Positions 9,035 to 17,703 of a stretch of DNA of 64,000 bases are shown here, piece after piece (positions within the stretch are counted from its first letter, which is position 1; each line of letters starts with the position of its first letter). The DNA is from Anaeramoeba ignava BMAN (Eukaryota; Protista; Anaeramoebae). Where the stretch lies: the NCBI GenBank assembly GCA_028826165.1, contig JAPDFW010000022.1, forward strand, positions 442,758 to 506,757, read 5' to 3'. Both the position numbers and the translations under genes were made by a program. The notes below the pieces were generated by a model. It was not told the DNA's origin. It saw only the letters and a list, made by a program, of their open reading frames with translations, and made no database searches.

Positions 9035-12000
9035 ATGAGTTCTCAAAAATCAAAATCAAATAAAAAAAAACGCAATAAAAAATTAAAAAAAGAAAATCAA
9101 ACCAATTTAATTTCAGTTCCTTCAATAGAAGAAAGTCAAAAAGAATGGAAAATAAAATTAATTACTTTCTTAAAACAAAAAAACAATCAAAAAATCAATT
9201 TAAATTTAGAAGAAGCGAGAAAATTTCATTATGTTTATATCAATCCAAAAGACATGATTTCCCATAGCGTTACAACAAACACGCCTCTAGTCCTTATGAA
9301 CACAGAAAATAACAGAATGGTTGTGATGAACTCCAAACCAAACGTTTCAATTTCATCGGGGAATATTTTCATTGCAAATGAAGATGACCTTTTGAATTTG
9401 GGGATATCGAGACAAAAATCACAAACTACAGGCGTTGAATCTCATGCTGTGATACTTGAGCATTTAAGTTCAAAGCACCAAGTCGTTCAGGCTTCTAAAA
9501 TAACACTTATTCCTGAATCAATTTCTGCCAAGATTTTGTTTTCGGGGAAAGACTCTAATCCCGAGACAATCAAATTATCAAATACTTACATTTCACAAAC
9601 CCTTCGGGATCGCTTTGTTATGAGTGGCTCTCGGTTGTCTATATTTCTTTTTGGTTCGAACCGTATATTTTTAATGGGATCCACAAAACCAAAGTCACAC
9701 ACGATTTATGAAATCACAAACAAAACAAAAATAGTTGTCAAAATTGACAGCTATAAATTTCTTAAGAACCAAAAGTGGAACACAAAATACTATCAAGTCA
9801 AATCTGATGAATTAGAGGGATTTGGAGGATTAGAAGCTGTAGGTGGACTTGAATCACAGACTAAAACAATAAAAGAAATAATAGAATATCCTGTTAAATT
9901 TCCAGAAATTTTTTCAATGTTTAAAATTCGCCCTGTTGTTGGTATTCTTCTTTTTGGCCCTCCTGGAACTGGCAAAACACTTCTGGCCAAAGCAATTGCA
10001 AAAGATTCAAAAAGAAACGTGTTTGTTATTAATGCGCCTGAAATTGCAGGTCAATACTATGGAGAATCAGAACAAATTTTACGTGATGTTTTTTCTTCTG
10101 CTCGTTCAAAATCTCCCTCGCTTATTCTTGTGGATGAAATGGATACTATTTTCCCCAAAAGAGAGGCTGCTATGAATGAAGCTGAGAAGAGAATTGTGTC
10201 TGAATTTCTGATTCAGATGGATCAGCTCTCTTCTAATTATGATCATCATCAATTTGATCCAAAAATTCACAATTCGGAAAATTTTCATTTGCAAAATGTT
10301 ATTGTAATTGGAACAACAAATAGGATTGAGGCTATTGATCCTGCTTTTAGAAGGCCTGGTAGATTTGATCGTGAGATTGAACTTGGTGTTCCAAGTGAAA
10401 AAGAAAGAGAGAAAATTTTGACAATTTTACTTAAATCTATTCCAAATAATTTGTCTGAAAAAGATATTAAATATTTTGCTGGATTAAGTCATGGATTTGT
10501 TGGAGCTGATTTAAATTTTCTTATTCAAGAAGGGTGTTTAAATTATATGAAGAGAATAAAAAGAAAGAAAGAAGAGAATAAAAATCAAAAAGAAATAAAA
10601 ATAGAAAATCAAAATCAAAATCAAAATCAAATTCAAAATCAAAATCAAAAAGAAATAAAAATAGAAAATCAAAACCAAAATCAAAATCAAAATCAAAATC
10701 AAAATCAAATCCAAAATCAAAATCAAAATCAAAATCAAAATCAAAATCAAAATCAAATTCAAAATCAAATTCAAAATCAAAATCAAATTCAAATTCAAAA
10801 TCAAAATCAAAATCAAAATCAAAATCAAAATCAAAATCAAATTCAAAATCAAAATCAAAATCAAAATCAAATTCAAAATCAAAATCAAAAAGAAATAAAA
10901 ATAGAAAATCAAAATCAAAATCAAAATCAAAATCAAAATCAAATTCAAAATCAAAATCAAATTCAAATTCAAATTCAAAAAGAAATAAAAATAGAAAATC
11001 AAATTCAAATTCAAAAAGAAATGAAAATAGAAAATCAAATTCAAAATCAAAATCAAAATCAAATTAAAAATCAAAAAGAAATAAAAATAGAAAATCAAAA
11101 TCAAAATCAAAATCAAAATCAAATTCAAAATCAAAATCAAAATCAAATTAAAAATCAAAAAGAAATAAAAATAGAAAATCAAATTCAAATTCAAAATCAA
11201 AATCAAATTCAAAATCAAATTCAAAATCAAAATCAAAATCAAAATCAAATTCAAATTCAAAAAGAAATTAAAATAGAAAATCAAAATCAAAATCAAAATC
11301 AAAATCAAAATCAAATTCAATATCAAAATCAAAATCAAAATCAAAATCAAATTAAAAATCAAAAAGAAATAAAAATAGAAAATCAAATTCAAATTCAAAA
11401 TCAAAATCAAATTCAAAATCAAATTCAAAATCAAATTCAAAATCAAAATCAAAATCAAAATCAAATTAAAAATCAAAAAGAAATAAAAATAGAAAATCAA
11501 ATTCAAATTCAAAATCAAAATCAAATTCAAAATCAAAATCAAAATCAAAATCAAATTCAAAAAGAAATAAAAATAGAAAATCAAATTCAAAAAGAAATGA
11601 AAATTGCTTTGGAATCAAAAGATCTTAAAAAAGCAATCCAAAAAATAAGACCAAGTGCAATGAGAGAAATATTAATTCAAGTTCCACATGTAAATTGGAA
11701 AGATATTGGAGGTCTTGAAGATGTCAAACAAAAACTCAAAGAATCAATTGAATGGCCAATTATTCATCCCCAAGCCTTTGAAAGATTAGGAATTAGAGCA
11801 CCAAAAGGTGTATTATTATATGGGCCTCCAGGTTGTAGTAAAACAATGATGGCTAAAGCCTTGGCAACAGAAGCTGGTCTTAATTTTCTTGCTGTAAAAG
11901 GCCCTGAAATATTCTGTTTATCTTCTCAAACAAAAATTCTTACTGATCATTTTGGATTAATTAATATCCAAGATTTATACCAAAAAATTAAACCTTTTTC

Positions 12001-13636
12001 TAAAAAACTCCCCTCAAATTTTTCATCTGGAAAAAAAGCAAGACAAATTATAGACTTGGAAATTAACACTTTATCTTTTGGATTTTGTTCTCAAAACCAA
12101 AAATTTGATTTTCATAAATTTGGAAAAATTGGAAATTCTTTGAATAATTTCAAATCAAAAATTTATAAAATTTATAAAATTTGGACAAACAAAGTATTTC
12201 AAATTACACTTGAAAATAACGCCAAAATACTCTGTTCAAAAAATCAACCATTAATTTGTAAATCCATTGATGGTTTCAAATGGGAAACTGTTGATAATAT
12301 TAAACAAGGAGATGAAATTTTGATTATAAACTCTTTTCCAAAATTTCAACCAAAAAAAATAAATTCTGAAAAAGTAGATTCATTTGGTTTTCCCTTTGTT
12401 TGTTTAGTTGGATGGTTTTTTTGTTGTGGAAAAATGAATTTGATTCAAAAAACAATTTCTTTAAGTTTTTCAGAAAATTGGGAATTAAAAGAATTGATTA
12501 AAATTATAAAAGAAAATAATATTGATAAAGAAAGGATGATAATAAGCAAAAGCTTTATTGAGTTTAGATCAGAAAAAATTGTGGAAAAAATTCTCAAAAT
12601 CTTTGGATTTACAAAAAGAAAAGATCAAAACCCAATTTTTATACCAAAAGAAACGCATATATCAAAATTTATTAATTTAAATTTGCTGAAGAATTTAGAT
12701 CAAGAGATGATCAAGATATTCATAAGAAGTTTTTTCAAAAATTTCTCGAACAACACAAAACAAACAATATTTTGGCAAACAAAAACAAGATTGCTTATGA
12801 TAAGCATGATATATCTTTTCCAGATTTCGCAAATTAGAATTTTAAGGATGGATTTTAATAAATTAGGAATTGAATTCCAAAATCCAAAATTTGGAGGTTG
12901 TGATGAAACAAAAGAAAAATTATATTTAAACGAACAATTAAGGACAATTGAAGTGATTGAAAAAAAGCAAATTCTCTCTCAATATCTTTATGATCTCGAA
13001 ACTGAAACAGGAGATTTTGTTGGAGGAGAAATAGGGATTCCATTGCACAACTCAAAATATGTAGGAGAGTCAGAAAAGGCGATCAAAAAAATATTTGACA
13101 AAGCAAGACAAGTTTCACCATCAATAATATTCTTTGATGAAATTGATTCTTTGGGAGCAAAACGAACAGGAGATGAAGGCGGATCTGGAGTAACAGACCG
13201 AGTTTTGAGTCAGTTACTCAATGAAATGGATGGAATCAATGATCTTCGAAATGTGACTGTTGTTGCAGCAACAAATAGACCTGATTTACTTGATCCAGCG
13301 CTTTTAAGACCAGGTCGTTTTGATAGGAAAATATACATTCCTCTTCCTGATTTTGATGCTCGTTGCAAGATTTTTGAAATCCAATTATCCAAAATTCCAC
13401 ATTCTTCTGATGTTGATGATCTTATTCCAAAATTTGCTCAAGATTCACAAAATTTTTCTGGTGCTGAAATTGTTTCTGTTTGTCGTGAAGCTTGTGTTTT
13501 TGCTATTGAGGAAAATCCTAATGCTTTGCAAGTTTTACCTTTTCATTTTACTAAAGCTTTGAAAATTTTTATTCCCAGAACTCCAAAAGAATTGATTGAT
13601 TATTATGAAAAATTTGAATCCAAAAGGGAGAAATGA
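9035..13636 (+). CDS. AFG2: AFG2/SPATA5 (Drg1)-like double AAA+ ATPase precursor containing a ~340-aa Q/N insert and an intein
   Basis: D1 [21 protein letters not shown]; linker IRPSAMRE; D2 GPPGCSKT (typical of AFG2/SPATA5), [14 protein letters not shown]. Confidence 0.85.
10580..11600 (+). repeat. In-frame coding repeat of (CAAAAT)n punctuated by QKEIKIEN units
   Basis: About 1 kb with no stop codon or frameshift. Confidence 0.95.
11915..13051 (+). mobile_element. Intein (379 aa, Cys961-Asn1339 of the precursor, Ser at +1) with degenerate LAGLIDADG homing endonuclease
   Basis: Interrupts the conserved KGPEIF|SKYVGESE. Starts [10 protein letters not shown], ends [24 protein letters not shown]. 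Central LVGWFFCCG and FIRSFFKNF are remnants of blocks C and E. Confidence 0.95.
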
Positions 13637-13883: not shown

Positions 13884-14678
13884 ATGAGTACATCTTCAAA
13901 ACCAACATGGAAATCTGCAAGAGGTGGATTGAATCAAGGAGGAACACTAACATTTGTTGCAACACAAATACAATCAGCAAGAGACTTACCATCACACAGA
14001 AAACTTAAAACAAGAAAACCAGGTCAAGGAAATGAAAATGATATTAAAAAAAGAGATTTAAAACAAGAATTAATTCAAAAGGAAAAAAATGCAAATAAAA
14101 ACGCACTTGGTTTAATAAAAGACCAAAAACAAAAAGAACCAGAAAAACAATCCCAAAAAGAAACACAAACTCAAGATACTCAAAATATATTAAAAAAATT
14201 CGAGGAAATTGATTCAGATGAACATATTTCAGATTCTGAAAGTGAAAGTGATCAAGAAAAAAAAAGTTCTGAAAACAAACAAAATAATCAATCTGCGGAA
14301 AATGAAAACGTAGATGATTCAAGTGATTCAGATTTTAGTTCAGATGATTCGGATGATTCAGAATCTTCTGATGAAACAGAATTTTTACTTCAAGAAATTC
14401 AGAAAATAAAAGAAGAAAGAGCTGAAAAAGTCAAAGAAGAAGAAGAGAAAAAACGAATCCAAGAAGAGAAAACTCAAGAGAAGAATATTCTAACTTCAAA
14501 TCCTTTACTTTCTTTTGATGATGATAATGACGAAAATCCTTTTTCAATTAAAAGAAGATGGAATGATGATGTTGTTTTTAAAAATCAAGCAAAAGAACCT
14601 GAAAAAAGAAAGCGTTTTATTAATGATACAATTAGGAATGATTTTCATATTCAATTCTTGAGAAGATTTATCAAATAA
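13884..14678 (+). CDS. CWC15: Pre-mRNA splicing factor Cwf15/CWC15
   Basis: MST..KPTW, SARDLPSHRKLKTR, KRRWNDDVVFKNQ, FINDTIRNDFHIQFLRRFIK. Confidence 0.95.
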   Translation: MSTSSKPTWKSARGGLNQGGTLTFVATQIQSARDLPSHRKLKTRKPGQGNENDIKKRDLKQELIQKEKNANKNALGLIKDQKQKEPEKQSQKETQTQDTQNILKKFEEIDSDEHISDSESESDQEKKSSENKQNNQSAENENVDDSSDSDFSSDDSDDSESSDETEFLLQEIQKIKEERAEKVKEEEEKKRIQEEKTQEKNILTSNPLLSFDDDNDENPFSIKRRWNDDVVFKNQAKEPEKRKRFINDTIRNDFHIQFLRRFIK

Positions 14679-14782: not shown

Positions 14783-17703
14783 TTATTTTGGGATTTCTTT
14801 CCACACTTTTTTTTCAATAAAAGATCCAATAAAAACAATTAGAATTATTGTTAAAAGAAAAGAAATAATTTTTTGATTTTCCAAATTTTCTTGATTTTGT
14901 TTTTGAATTGAAATTGTTTCTTTTTCTTCTTCAAATAAAATGATTTTGTCTTCTTTTTTTTCTTTTAGAATATTTTCTAAAATAGGTTTGAATTCAAAAT
15001 GAGGTTTAGGATATAAAACTGATCGAGAAGATGAACCAAAAAAATCTGTAATTAGAACATTATTTAAATCTCTTTGAAATTGAAATGCTTCCCAATAAGG
15101 ATTTGAATTAATTGGAGCATGTTTATAACTTTGAAACTATTTAAATTAATATTTAAATTTATATTTAAAATAATATTTAAATTAATATTTAAATTAATAT
15201 TTATATTAATATTTAAATTTAAATTAATATTTAAAATAATATTTAAATTAATATTTAAATTAATATTTAAATTAATATTTAAATTAATATTTAAATTAAT
15301 ATTTAAATTAATATTTAAATTAATATTTAAATTAAATATTTAAATTAATATTTAAATTAATATTTAAATTAATATTTAAATTAATATTTAAATCAATATT
15401 TAAATTAATATTTAAAATGGATATTTAAAATAATATTTAAATTAATATTGAAATTAATATTTAAATTAATATTTAAATCAATATTTTTCTAAATCAATTT
15501 TAAATCAATATTTAAAATCAATATTTAAATTAATATTTAAATTAAATATTTAAAAATTAATATTTAAATCAATATTTAAATCCCCTCCAATATTTAAATT
15601 AATATTTAAATCAATATTTAAATTAATATTTAAATTAATATTTAAATTAATATTTAAATTAATATTTAAATTAATATTTAAATTAATATTTAAAATAATA
15701 TTTAAATCAATATTGAAATTAATATTTAAATTAATATTTAAATTAATATTTAAATTAATATTTAAATTAAATATTTAAATCAATATTTAAATCAATATTT
15801 ATATTAATATTTATATTAAATAATCTACAAGAGAAATAAGCTTTTCATTGCTTCCAGGAGTTATTTTATCCAAGAAATTAAGGGAAGCAAGAGTGAATTG
15901 ATCAACTTCAGAAATACCAATATCAGAATCAGAATTTGAAGAATAACTATTTTCATGATAACGACTACTTCCAACAACAATAACATTTGGTGAATAAATT
16001 CTTTGAAAAAGTGTTGCAGCTTGACAAGTATCAACCATTACAAAAATCTCATTATATCTTTTATTTTGATGCATTTCCTCAATTGCATTTGCTAATTCAT
16101 AACTTGTTATTTCTTCTGTATCTTGAAATTTTAAAAATTCATCTCCTCCATGTCCAGTCATATAAATTAATATGTTTGATCCTGAATCAGTAAATAATCT
16201 TTTGTTTCGTGGTTCTTCTTCTTTATGTCTTCCAGTTAAAACTCTCATGAAGTTTTCAACAGAAACATCAAGGCCTTTAAAATAAATATTTAAAATAATA
16301 TTTAAAATAATATTTAAATTAATATTTAAATTAATATTTAAATTAATATTTAAATTAATATTTAAATTAATATTTAAAATAATATTTAAATTAATATTTA
16401 AATTAATATTTAAATTAATATTGAAATTAATATTTAAATTAATATTTAAAATAATATTTAAATAAATACCAATTGGAAATAATATTTAAATTTTAAATTA
16501 ATATTTAAATCAATATTTAAATTAATATTTAAATCAATATTTTTAAATTAAATATTTAAATCAATATTTAAATCAATATTTAAAATTAATATTTAAATTA
16601 ATATTTAAAATTAATATTTAAAATTAATATTTAAATTAATATTTAAATTAAATATTGAAATTAATATTTAAAAATTGGAAATATTTAAATTAAATATTTA
16701 AATTAATATTTAAATTTAAAATATTTAAATCAATATTTAAATTAATATTTAAAATAATATTTAAAATTCTTAATATTTAAATTAATATTTAAATAAATAT
16801 TGAAAATAATATTTAAAATTAAATATTTAAAAATATTTAAAATTAATATTTAAATTAATATTTAAATTAATATTTAAATTAATATTTAAATTAATATTTA
16901 AATTAATATTTAAATTAATATTTAAAATTAATATTTAAATTAATATTTAAATTAATATTTAAATTAATATTGAAATTAATATTTAAATTAATATTTAAAT
17001 TAATATTTAAATTAATATTTAAATTAATATTTAAATTAATATTTAATTAATATTTAAAATAATATTTAAAATTAAAATATTTTAAATTAATATTGAAATT
17101 AATATTTAAAATAATATTTAAATTAATATTTAAATTAATATTTAAATTAATATTTAAATTAATATTTAAATTAATATTTAAATTAATATTTAAATTAATA
17201 TTTAAATTAATATTTAAAATAATATTTAAATTAATATTTAAATTAATATTTAAATTAATATTTAAATTAAATTAAATTTATTTAATTAATATTTAAATTA
17301 ATATTTAAATTAATATTTAAATTAATATTGAAATTAATATTTAAATAAATTTACCTCTATAATCAACCTCTATATTTTCGCCATAAAGATTTATTTTGTG
17401 ATCTAAATTATTAAAAATTGTTCCAGGATATTTATTTCTTGGATTACATGCGTAGTCATCTGCAAGCATTAAAATGATTTGAGAATCTGGAATCCCCAAA
17501 TTTTTTACAAGATAATATATTGAAAGTGCATTTGCTGTATGTCTATAATTGAACCAAAATCGAGATGTAGATACAATAACTGCCCAATTACTTGTTATTT
17601 TTGATTCTGTGTTTGTAATTTCTTTAGCTTTTAAAGTGTGAGAATTTAACAAAAATAAAATTAAAATTGAAATCAAGGAAATTTTAATTGATGAAGAAAT
17701 CAT
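14783..17703 (-). CDS. GPI8: GPI transamidase catalytic subunit (peptidase C13); exons 17703-17355, 16274-15829, 15136-14783
   Basis: [43 protein letters not shown], signal peptide and C-terminal TM. Confidence 0.95.
15140..15820. repeat. 12-bp (TAATATTTAAAT)n array in GPI8 intron 2
   Basis: Tandem array visible directly. Confidence 0.95.
16280..17345. repeat. 12-bp (TAATATTTAAAT)n array in GPI8 intron 1
   Basis: Same unit as intron 2. Confidence 0.95.

Follow-up and report, generated by a model that had tools for sequence, protein, structure and literature searches.

A predicted class 1 intein of archaeal affinity in an AFG2/SPATA5-type ATPase gene of Anaeramoeba ignava BMAN

The stretch analyzed here, referred to as the window, comprises 64,000 nucleotides of contig JAPDFW010000022.1 from Anaeramoeba ignava BMAN, in which a window coordinate equals the C13 coordinate minus 442757. 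On its forward strand, a 1533-amino-acid open reading frame (ORF; 9035..13636) encodes a double AAA ATPase of the AFG2/SPATA5 type whose second ATPase domain (D2) is interrupted by an in-frame insert of 379 amino acids, or 1137 nucleotides (11915..13051). Taken as a whole, the evidence makes it very probable that this is the organism's sole AFG2/SPATA5-type ATPase and that it carries a self-excising class 1 intein of archaeal allelic origin, from which the homing endonuclease activity has been lost.

The interrupted ATPase gene

The N-terminal host segment (N-extein; 9035..11914, forward strand) contains an N-terminal region, the first AAA domain (D1) with its Walker A (9956-9979) and Walker B (10121-10144) motifs, a low-complexity linker, and the start of D2, including the Walker A motif GPPGCSKT (11822..11845), up to the sequence KGPEIF, the last nucleotide of which is 11914. 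The C-terminal segment (C-extein; 13052..13633, forward strand) runs from the serine following the insert to the lid and the C-terminus, and supplies the Walker B (13124-13147), sensor 1 (13268-13285), and Arg-finger region (13307-13333) of D2. Pfam AAA matches the ORF in three stretches (expectation value [E] 4.5e-78), and in D1 as well as D2, the Walker A and Walker B motifs, sensor 1, and Arg fingers are all preserved.

The insert begins with Cys961 (Cys1 of the intein; 11915-11917) and closes with His1338-Asn1339 (13046-13051, the Asn occupying 13049-13051), so that the D2 motif GPEIF/SKYVGESE is interrupted between Phe960 and Ser1340. A preliminary description of this DNA had placed a 379-amino-acid in-frame insert between the D2 Walker A and Walker B motifs, and its coordinates proved exact. 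It had also proposed that removal of the insert restores an intact AAA domain, which holds: the match to TIGR01243, the CDC48 family profile, reaches profile position 525 at 11917 and picks up at 524 at 13049, and since these positions abut across the insert, exact excision gives back a continuous domain. With the insert removed, GPEIF/SKYVGESE agrees with intein-free AFG2 and CDC48 proteins, and the mature protein would have a calculated length of 1154 amino acids.

The open frame of the insert is not due to chance. There are no in-frame stops, whereas the alternative frames contain 32 and 36, and composition-matched shuffles averaged 36 stops, with none of 2000 being stop-free. This bears directly on the possibility that the segment is a spliceosomal intron, removed from the RNA and never translated. 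AT-rich introns do exist in this genome (PMC11550330), the A+T content of the segment exceeds that of its flanks, and one in-frame GT...AG pair (11916...13034) is present, although its use would leave six extra residues at the pore loop. Set against this are the 379 stop-free codons where about 36 stops would be expected, the full-length homology to inteins of a translation that retains every catalytic position, and a guanine-plus-cytosine (GC) content of 24.5%, versus approximately 8% for the organism's introns (PMC11550330). Furthermore, contigs span both borders, and no joint that removes the insert was seen in the sequencing runs examined, which were compared over 2,141 nucleotides. Two joints with 21-nucleotide sides were encountered, but these sides are found in DNA runs as well and were treated as low-complexity artefacts. 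An intron is therefore an extremely improbable explanation.

Within the D1-D2 linker, positions 10559..11600 (forward strand) would encode in frame approximately 340 amino acids of low-complexity repeat rich in Asn, Gln, Ile, and Lys, with units resembling KEIKIEN plus NQ runs. The GC content of this tract is about 15%, Logan contigs break there, and its opposite strand is likewise open (350 amino acids), as expected of simple repeats. The two exteins were searched and placed in phylogenetic trees separately, as two pieces.

Host identity is best seen in these trees. In the maximum-likelihood tree of the C-extein, the Anaeramoeba sequence falls inside a group of 11 eukaryotic SPATA5/AFG2 proteins (support 99/98), apart from 23 archaeal CDC48 proteins and from the CDC48 of its own genome. 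The D1 tree places it, on a long branch, on the same side as eukaryotic AFG2 (99% by the Shimodaira-Hasegawa-like approximate likelihood ratio test) and apart from 17 archaeal CDC48 proteins. Sequence identity between the C-extein and SPATA5/AFG2 proteins from Acanthamoeba, Balamuthia, and chytrids is 54-57%, versus 48-52% for archaeal CDC48, and the best eukaryotic PDB match of both exteins is 8rhn_K, human AFG2A/SPATA5, with the C-extein match reaching the very C-terminus. Beside the archaeal proteins, the CDC48 and NVL references in these trees were the genome's own paralogues only, a limited sampling within which the sequence data support an AFG2/SPATA5 (AFG2A) orthologue rather than CDC48 proper, as the preliminary description had assigned it.

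A laterally acquired archaeal CDC48/VAT gene with a resident intein would offer a different account of the host. VAT tops the PDB matches of the N-extein (359 versus 330 bits for SPATA5), its best 120 database matches are all archaeal CDC48, and all relatives of the intein itself are archaeal. The database ranking was set aside as a guide to orthology, as two-domain targets sum their scores, and the trees were used instead. VAT likewise ranks first for a different paralogue of this genome, and its rank is thus generic; scored per high-scoring segment pair, eukaryotic SPATA5 is favored (202-217 versus at most 197 bits). With a eukaryote-style long N-terminal region, a composition as extreme as that of the host genome, and 99% support for placing both the C-extein and D1 in or next to the eukaryotic SPATA5/AFG2 group, an archaeal host gene is highly improbable.

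The remaining members of the family in this genome lack the insert. The paralogue closest to the C-extein shares 49% identity with it, and the intein is single-copy. A true CDC48 (C60), whose 826 bits exceed the cut-off of the family, is without an intein, and neither this gene nor the NVL-like gene on C102 nor a paralogue on C104 has one at this site; indeed, no other CDC48-family gene of the genome shows an intein. Likewise, the intein domain is absent from all eukaryotic SPATA5 matches. The C104 paralogue (L004:544-2838), a CDC48-family protein of 765 amino acids, has a degenerate D1, and matches to solved structures are confined to its second AAA domain. It resembles AFG2B/SPATA5L1, with a score of 400 bits and the whole of D2 covered, and may be an AFG2B-like partner subunit of the AFG2A host.

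The insert and its archaeal relatives

By itself, the insert is only faintly recognized by standard profiles: Pfam Intein_splicing reaches 29.9 bits (E 5.8e-7), short of its cut-off of 35.8, and TIGR01445, which describes the intein N-terminal region, matches at E 1.2e-4, just under its cut-off. Similarly, phmmer finds weak matches of both terminal blocks to VMA inteins of Thermococcales (7qss, 7qst, 7qsu). A profile built from the family alignment is far more sensitive, matching 7qss at E 3e-41 and also the PI-PkoII, PI-PfuI, TFIIB, RadA, PolII, CDC21, and DnaB inteins. The AlphaFold model from the same alignment averages 69.6 in its predicted local distance difference test score (pLDDT), and its splicing segments reach 82-96. 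When compared with the PDB by Foldseek, its top matches are all inteins, including 7qss (E 8e-19) and the TvoVMA mini-intein (template-modelling score 0.61; root-mean-square deviation 2.5 Å); the Saccharomyces VMA1 intein (1ef0, 1vde) and the Hint domain of Hedgehog were also matched. The preliminary description had made its intein call depend on a Hint fold being recoverable by profiles and structure prediction, and such a fold was found. Residues of the class 1 pathway are present as well, with Cys961 at the start of the insert and His1338-Asn1339 followed by Ser1340. Judged by its sequence and modelled fold, the insert is a class 1 intein with a Hint domain, and splicing itself is predicted.

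The closest relatives of this intein occupy the same site in archaea. A phmmer search with the single intein, run exhaustively against 1.84 billion representative sequences, yielded just two true relatives, the archaeal-type CDC48 proteins P0001 and P0003, each with an intein at the same place; a third match was a PDZ false positive. The family came into view only upon a re-search with the P0001 intein, which added approximately 20 metagenomic proteins bearing an intein of this type at the site, with S-x-N-Q-P and an open frame in all of them. When prokaryotes were scanned with each species represented by a single genome, 29 archaeal species proved to carry an intein at KGPELL/C...LHN/SKWVGESE, in every case in D2 of CDC48, with lengths of 452-532 amino acids (mostly 459-469) and open reading frames in all 29. 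Hosts include members of the DPANN group (Woese-, Aenigmat-, Nano-, Pace-, Micr-, Parv-, and Nanohaloarchaea), Hadarchaeota, ANME-1, and Methanosarcinales, along with two Asgard archaea, namely a member of the Hodarchaeaceae (L013:1501-2889) and one of the Hermodarchaeota (L027:1501-2877), in both of which the frame is intact and block B reads S-A-N-Q-P.

The Anaeramoeba intein aligns end to end with these archaeal D2-site inteins at 20-30% identity, its closest single match being a copy from a Woesearchaeota genome (L007, 66 bits). Invariant across the alignment are C1, S108, N110, Q111, P112, D360, H378, and N379. The insertion point (GPExx/SKxVGESE), Cys1, the terminal His-Asn, the serine at +1, the S-x-N-Q-P block B, and the order of domains are all shared. 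In contrast, the archaeal copies have intact LAGLIDADG motifs with acidic residues and reside in archaeal CDC48/VAT, whereas the 379-amino-acid Anaeramoeba copy has a 15-amino-acid insertion in the N-terminal splicing part, replacements at both acids, a deletion of about 80 amino acids, and the paralogous AFG2 as its host. The comparison with known intein alleles of AAA proteins that the preliminary description had in mind thus leads to the identical site in D2 of archaeal CDC48, and these allelic relatives, together with the weak Pfam and TIGR matches and the Hint fold, bear out its identification of the insert as an intein. A literature check returned no usable earlier description of archaeal CDC48 inteins or of their histidine-less block B.

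By profile and fold, the best solved relatives are the Thermococcales VMA inteins (TliVMA, 7qss/7qsu; PhoVMA, 7qst), which share the Hint plus LAGLIDADG architecture and have very similar blocks A, F, and G, but reside in the V-ATPase A subunit and possess a canonical T-x-x-H block B. The Saccharomyces VMA1 intein, PI-SceI, is likewise nuclear and class 1, with a nested LAGLIDADG domain and a P-loop ATPase as host, yet it has no detectable sequence similarity to the Anaeramoeba AFG2 intein. PI-SceI is an active homing endonuclease with a canonical block B.

Splicing blocks and a degenerate endonuclease

Block A, the N-terminal splicing motif beginning at Cys1, lies at 11915..11956, and blocks F and G, the C-terminal splicing motifs (YDLET...FVGG...LHN), at 12983..13051, all on the forward strand; conservation of F and G is good. 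Block B (12233..12250, forward strand) reads C-S-K-N-Q-P and is non-canonical: its S-K-N-Q aligns with T-P-I-H of 7qss, so that Ser and Gln replace the Thr and His of the canonical Thr-x-x-His. The block B histidine is usually the best-conserved residue of an intein, but inteins lacking it are known, and a canonical block B is frequent rather than obligatory. The S-x-N-Q-P form is found in 29/29 archaeal allelic copies, and because the same block B occurs in all of these within intact CDC48 genes, S-x-N-Q appears to be a trait of a working family and not a sign of decay. The archaeal CDC48 family may provide a natural system for studying activation of the N-terminal scissile bond with Gln in place of His.

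Between the splicing blocks, a degenerate LAGLIDADG homing-endonuclease domain covers intein residues ~141-339 (12335..12931, forward strand), with motif remnants at 12407-12430 and 12719-12751. Motif 1 carries Cys instead of the relatives' Glu, and in motif 2 their G-D-G is replaced by N-F-S; roughly 80 amino acids are also gone from the C-terminal part of the domain relative to the archaeal copies. An active LAGLIDADG endonuclease has two motifs, each with a catalytic Asp or Glu, and the Anaeramoeba domain is only a remnant of one. Having lost both catalytic acids and these ~80 amino acids, the intein is predicted to be able to splice but not to home. Of the columns in which the archaeal family shows 80% conservation or more, the Anaeramoeba copy keeps 60% in the N-terminal and 71% in the C-terminal splicing part, versus just 38% in the endonuclease part, a pattern that would be expected when selection acts on splicing alone.

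Several observations weigh against a functional intein, and it is here that a decayed, splicing-incompetent remnant has to be considered, in which case the protein would be either non-functional (i.e., a pseudogene in the making) or working with a 379-amino-acid domain inside D2. The block B His is absent, as is the block F His of the VMA inteins, which is not conserved in the family of this intein either. The endonuclease is degenerate, and the Pfam and TIGR scores of the Anaeramoeba copy by itself stay below the curated cut-offs. The insert, at 24.5% GC, is AT-richer than the exteins (33-37%), and two variants differ between sequencing runs, both of them non-synonymous (window 12380 T>A, S156T; 12867 G>A, G318E), indicating relaxed constraint. 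Both sit in the endonuclease remnant, and no variant between runs was seen in the flanking extein sequence covered. In addition, a search of sequencing runs found four that contain the locus, none recorded as RNA, and hence gave no direct evidence of splicing; contigs of the X4 run bridge both junctions with no joint that removes the insert.

Against decay stand the invariance of the histidine-less S-x-N-Q in 29/29 archaeal genome copies within intact CDC48 genes; the retention of Cys1, Asp360, His378, Asn379, and the serine at +1; and splicing blocks that are about twice as conserved as the endonuclease part. The host is, moreover, the only AFG2A-type gene of the genome, its ATPase motifs are all intact, and an unspliced insert two residues off pore loop 1 should abolish its function. 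A decayed remnant is accordingly unlikely, and an intein that is still competent for splicing is the preferred reading.

As for the site itself, the intein lies between Walker A and Walker B of D2, directly before S-K-Y-V-G. The aromatic-hydrophobic-Gly triplet of this sequence is presumably AAA pore loop 1 (K-Y-V-G, 13055-13066), as in other AAA+ ATPases, and the insertion point is two residues ahead of the tyrosine of this substrate-gripping loop. Given that the intein adjoins the D2 pore loop, the unspliced precursor should be inactive, and function would require splicing. Judging from yeast Drg1/Afg2 and human SPATA5, the Anaeramoeba ATPase would serve in releasing a 60S assembly factor, would be essential, and would depend on protein self-splicing.

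The preliminary description had supposed that the yeast and human orthologues carry Asn at the position equivalent to +1 and that the Ser of Anaeramoeba (13052-13054) is what allows splicing. Human SPATA5 does have Asn there, but Ser is nothing special at this position: it is the most frequent residue in the sampled eukaryotic AFG2 D2 domains (7/10) and occurs in all archaeal CDC48 proteins examined. Thus Ser+1, although apparently required for splicing, is an ordinary residue rather than an adaptation, and it is probably ancestral.

While the splicing residues are observed in the sequence, the chemistry proposed here follows the established class 1 mechanism. The whole 1533-amino-acid precursor would be translated, and the intein would then remove itself in four steps. 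An N-S acyl shift at Cys961 would generate a thioester, which would undergo trans-esterification onto the hydroxyl of Ser1340; cyclization of Asn1339, assisted by His1338, would then release the intein, and an O-N shift would restore the peptide bond of the host, giving the 1154-amino-acid ATPase.

Origin and genomic setting

Three further inteins were found at the equivalent D1 site of archaeal CDC48 (GPExM/C...LHN/SKFYGESE; P0005:288-754, P0021:278-744, and P0023:284-751). Block B is likewise S-x-N-Q-P in these copies, which are second, related inteins of their host proteins. This suggests, from the sequences, that inteins have homed from one to the other of the paralogous sites in D1 and D2 within a single CDC48 gene. 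In the intein tree, the D1-site and D2-site groups are split at 100%, and the Anaeramoeba copy falls on the D2 side, nested among DPANN copies, with a branch length of 5.06 and a deviant composition. Any direction of transfer read from this tree depends on that very long branch, which counts against placing too much weight upon it. No viral relative was found in IMG/VR, a weak negative in that the divergent Anaeramoeba copy was used for confirmation.

The most likely, and most economical, reading is transfer from an anaerobic archaeon into AFG2, followed by decay of the endonuclease. An archaeal D2-site intein would have entered the paralogous site of the eukaryotic AFG2 gene by homing or lateral transfer and would subsequently have lost its homing endonuclease, becoming a fixed, immobile passenger that may be retained only because imprecise loss would wreck the pore loop. 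On this account, one homing site has been used across paralogues (CDC48 D1, CDC48 D2, and AFG2) and across domains of life. The same allelic intein in D2 of Asgard CDC48 (L013, L027) raises the alternative of a vertical relic, inherited from the archaeal ancestor of eukaryotes, older than the CDC48/AFG2 split, and surviving in the Anaeramoeba lineage alone among the eukaryotes sampled. Vertical inheritance from an Asgard-like ancestor needs many losses and is very unlikely; if true, few selfish elements that can be traced in eukaryotic nuclear genes would be older than this intein.

Inteins are already known to abound in this genus, with 45-103 published for Anaeramoeba (PMC10710043). In A. 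ignava BMAN alone, 103 have been described, five of them in Prp8 and three each in dynein and MCM6 (PMC10710043). The Pfam intein scan of the 42.8-Mb assembly made here returned at least 48 matches, a lower bound, as the AFG2 locus is not among them. The same genome also shows a PROCN domain of PRP8 (G000:C98:193512-196488) into which approximately 1.7 kb is inserted between positions 331 and 336 of the profile, consistent with one of the organism's published PRP8 inteins.

Gallot-Lavallée et al. (PNAS 2023) list for BMAN a singleton "CDC48 ATPase" intein that is weakly similar to archaeal inteins at the orthologous site (PMC10710043). Since only one CDC48-family gene of the genome has an intein, the AFG2 intein is almost certainly this entry. 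The published label is CDC48, assumed to be a KOG-level name, whereas the trees presented here put the host in AFG2/SPATA5; the main text of that paper does not discuss the histidine-less block B or the pore-loop position (PMC10710043). With the organism's intein census already in print, the present work provides an independent, base-level confirmation of one published Anaeramoeba intein entry and adds to the published main text the AFG2 host, the D2 pore-loop position, the histidine-less archaeal family, and the dead endonuclease.

The window is 81.5% A+T, and the BMAN genome as published is 80.65% A+T and roughly one-sixth the size of the A. flamelloides genome (PMC11550330). Downstream of the AFG2 gene, two ORFs appear, from their translations, to be ordinary nuclear genes: one at 13884-14678 (forward strand), whose predicted product is acidic and CWC15-like at its N-terminus, and one at 15811-16248 (reverse strand), a GPI8/legumain-like fragment. 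The GC content of the intergenic stretches falls to 1-6% (e.g., 15200-15800 and 16250-17000).

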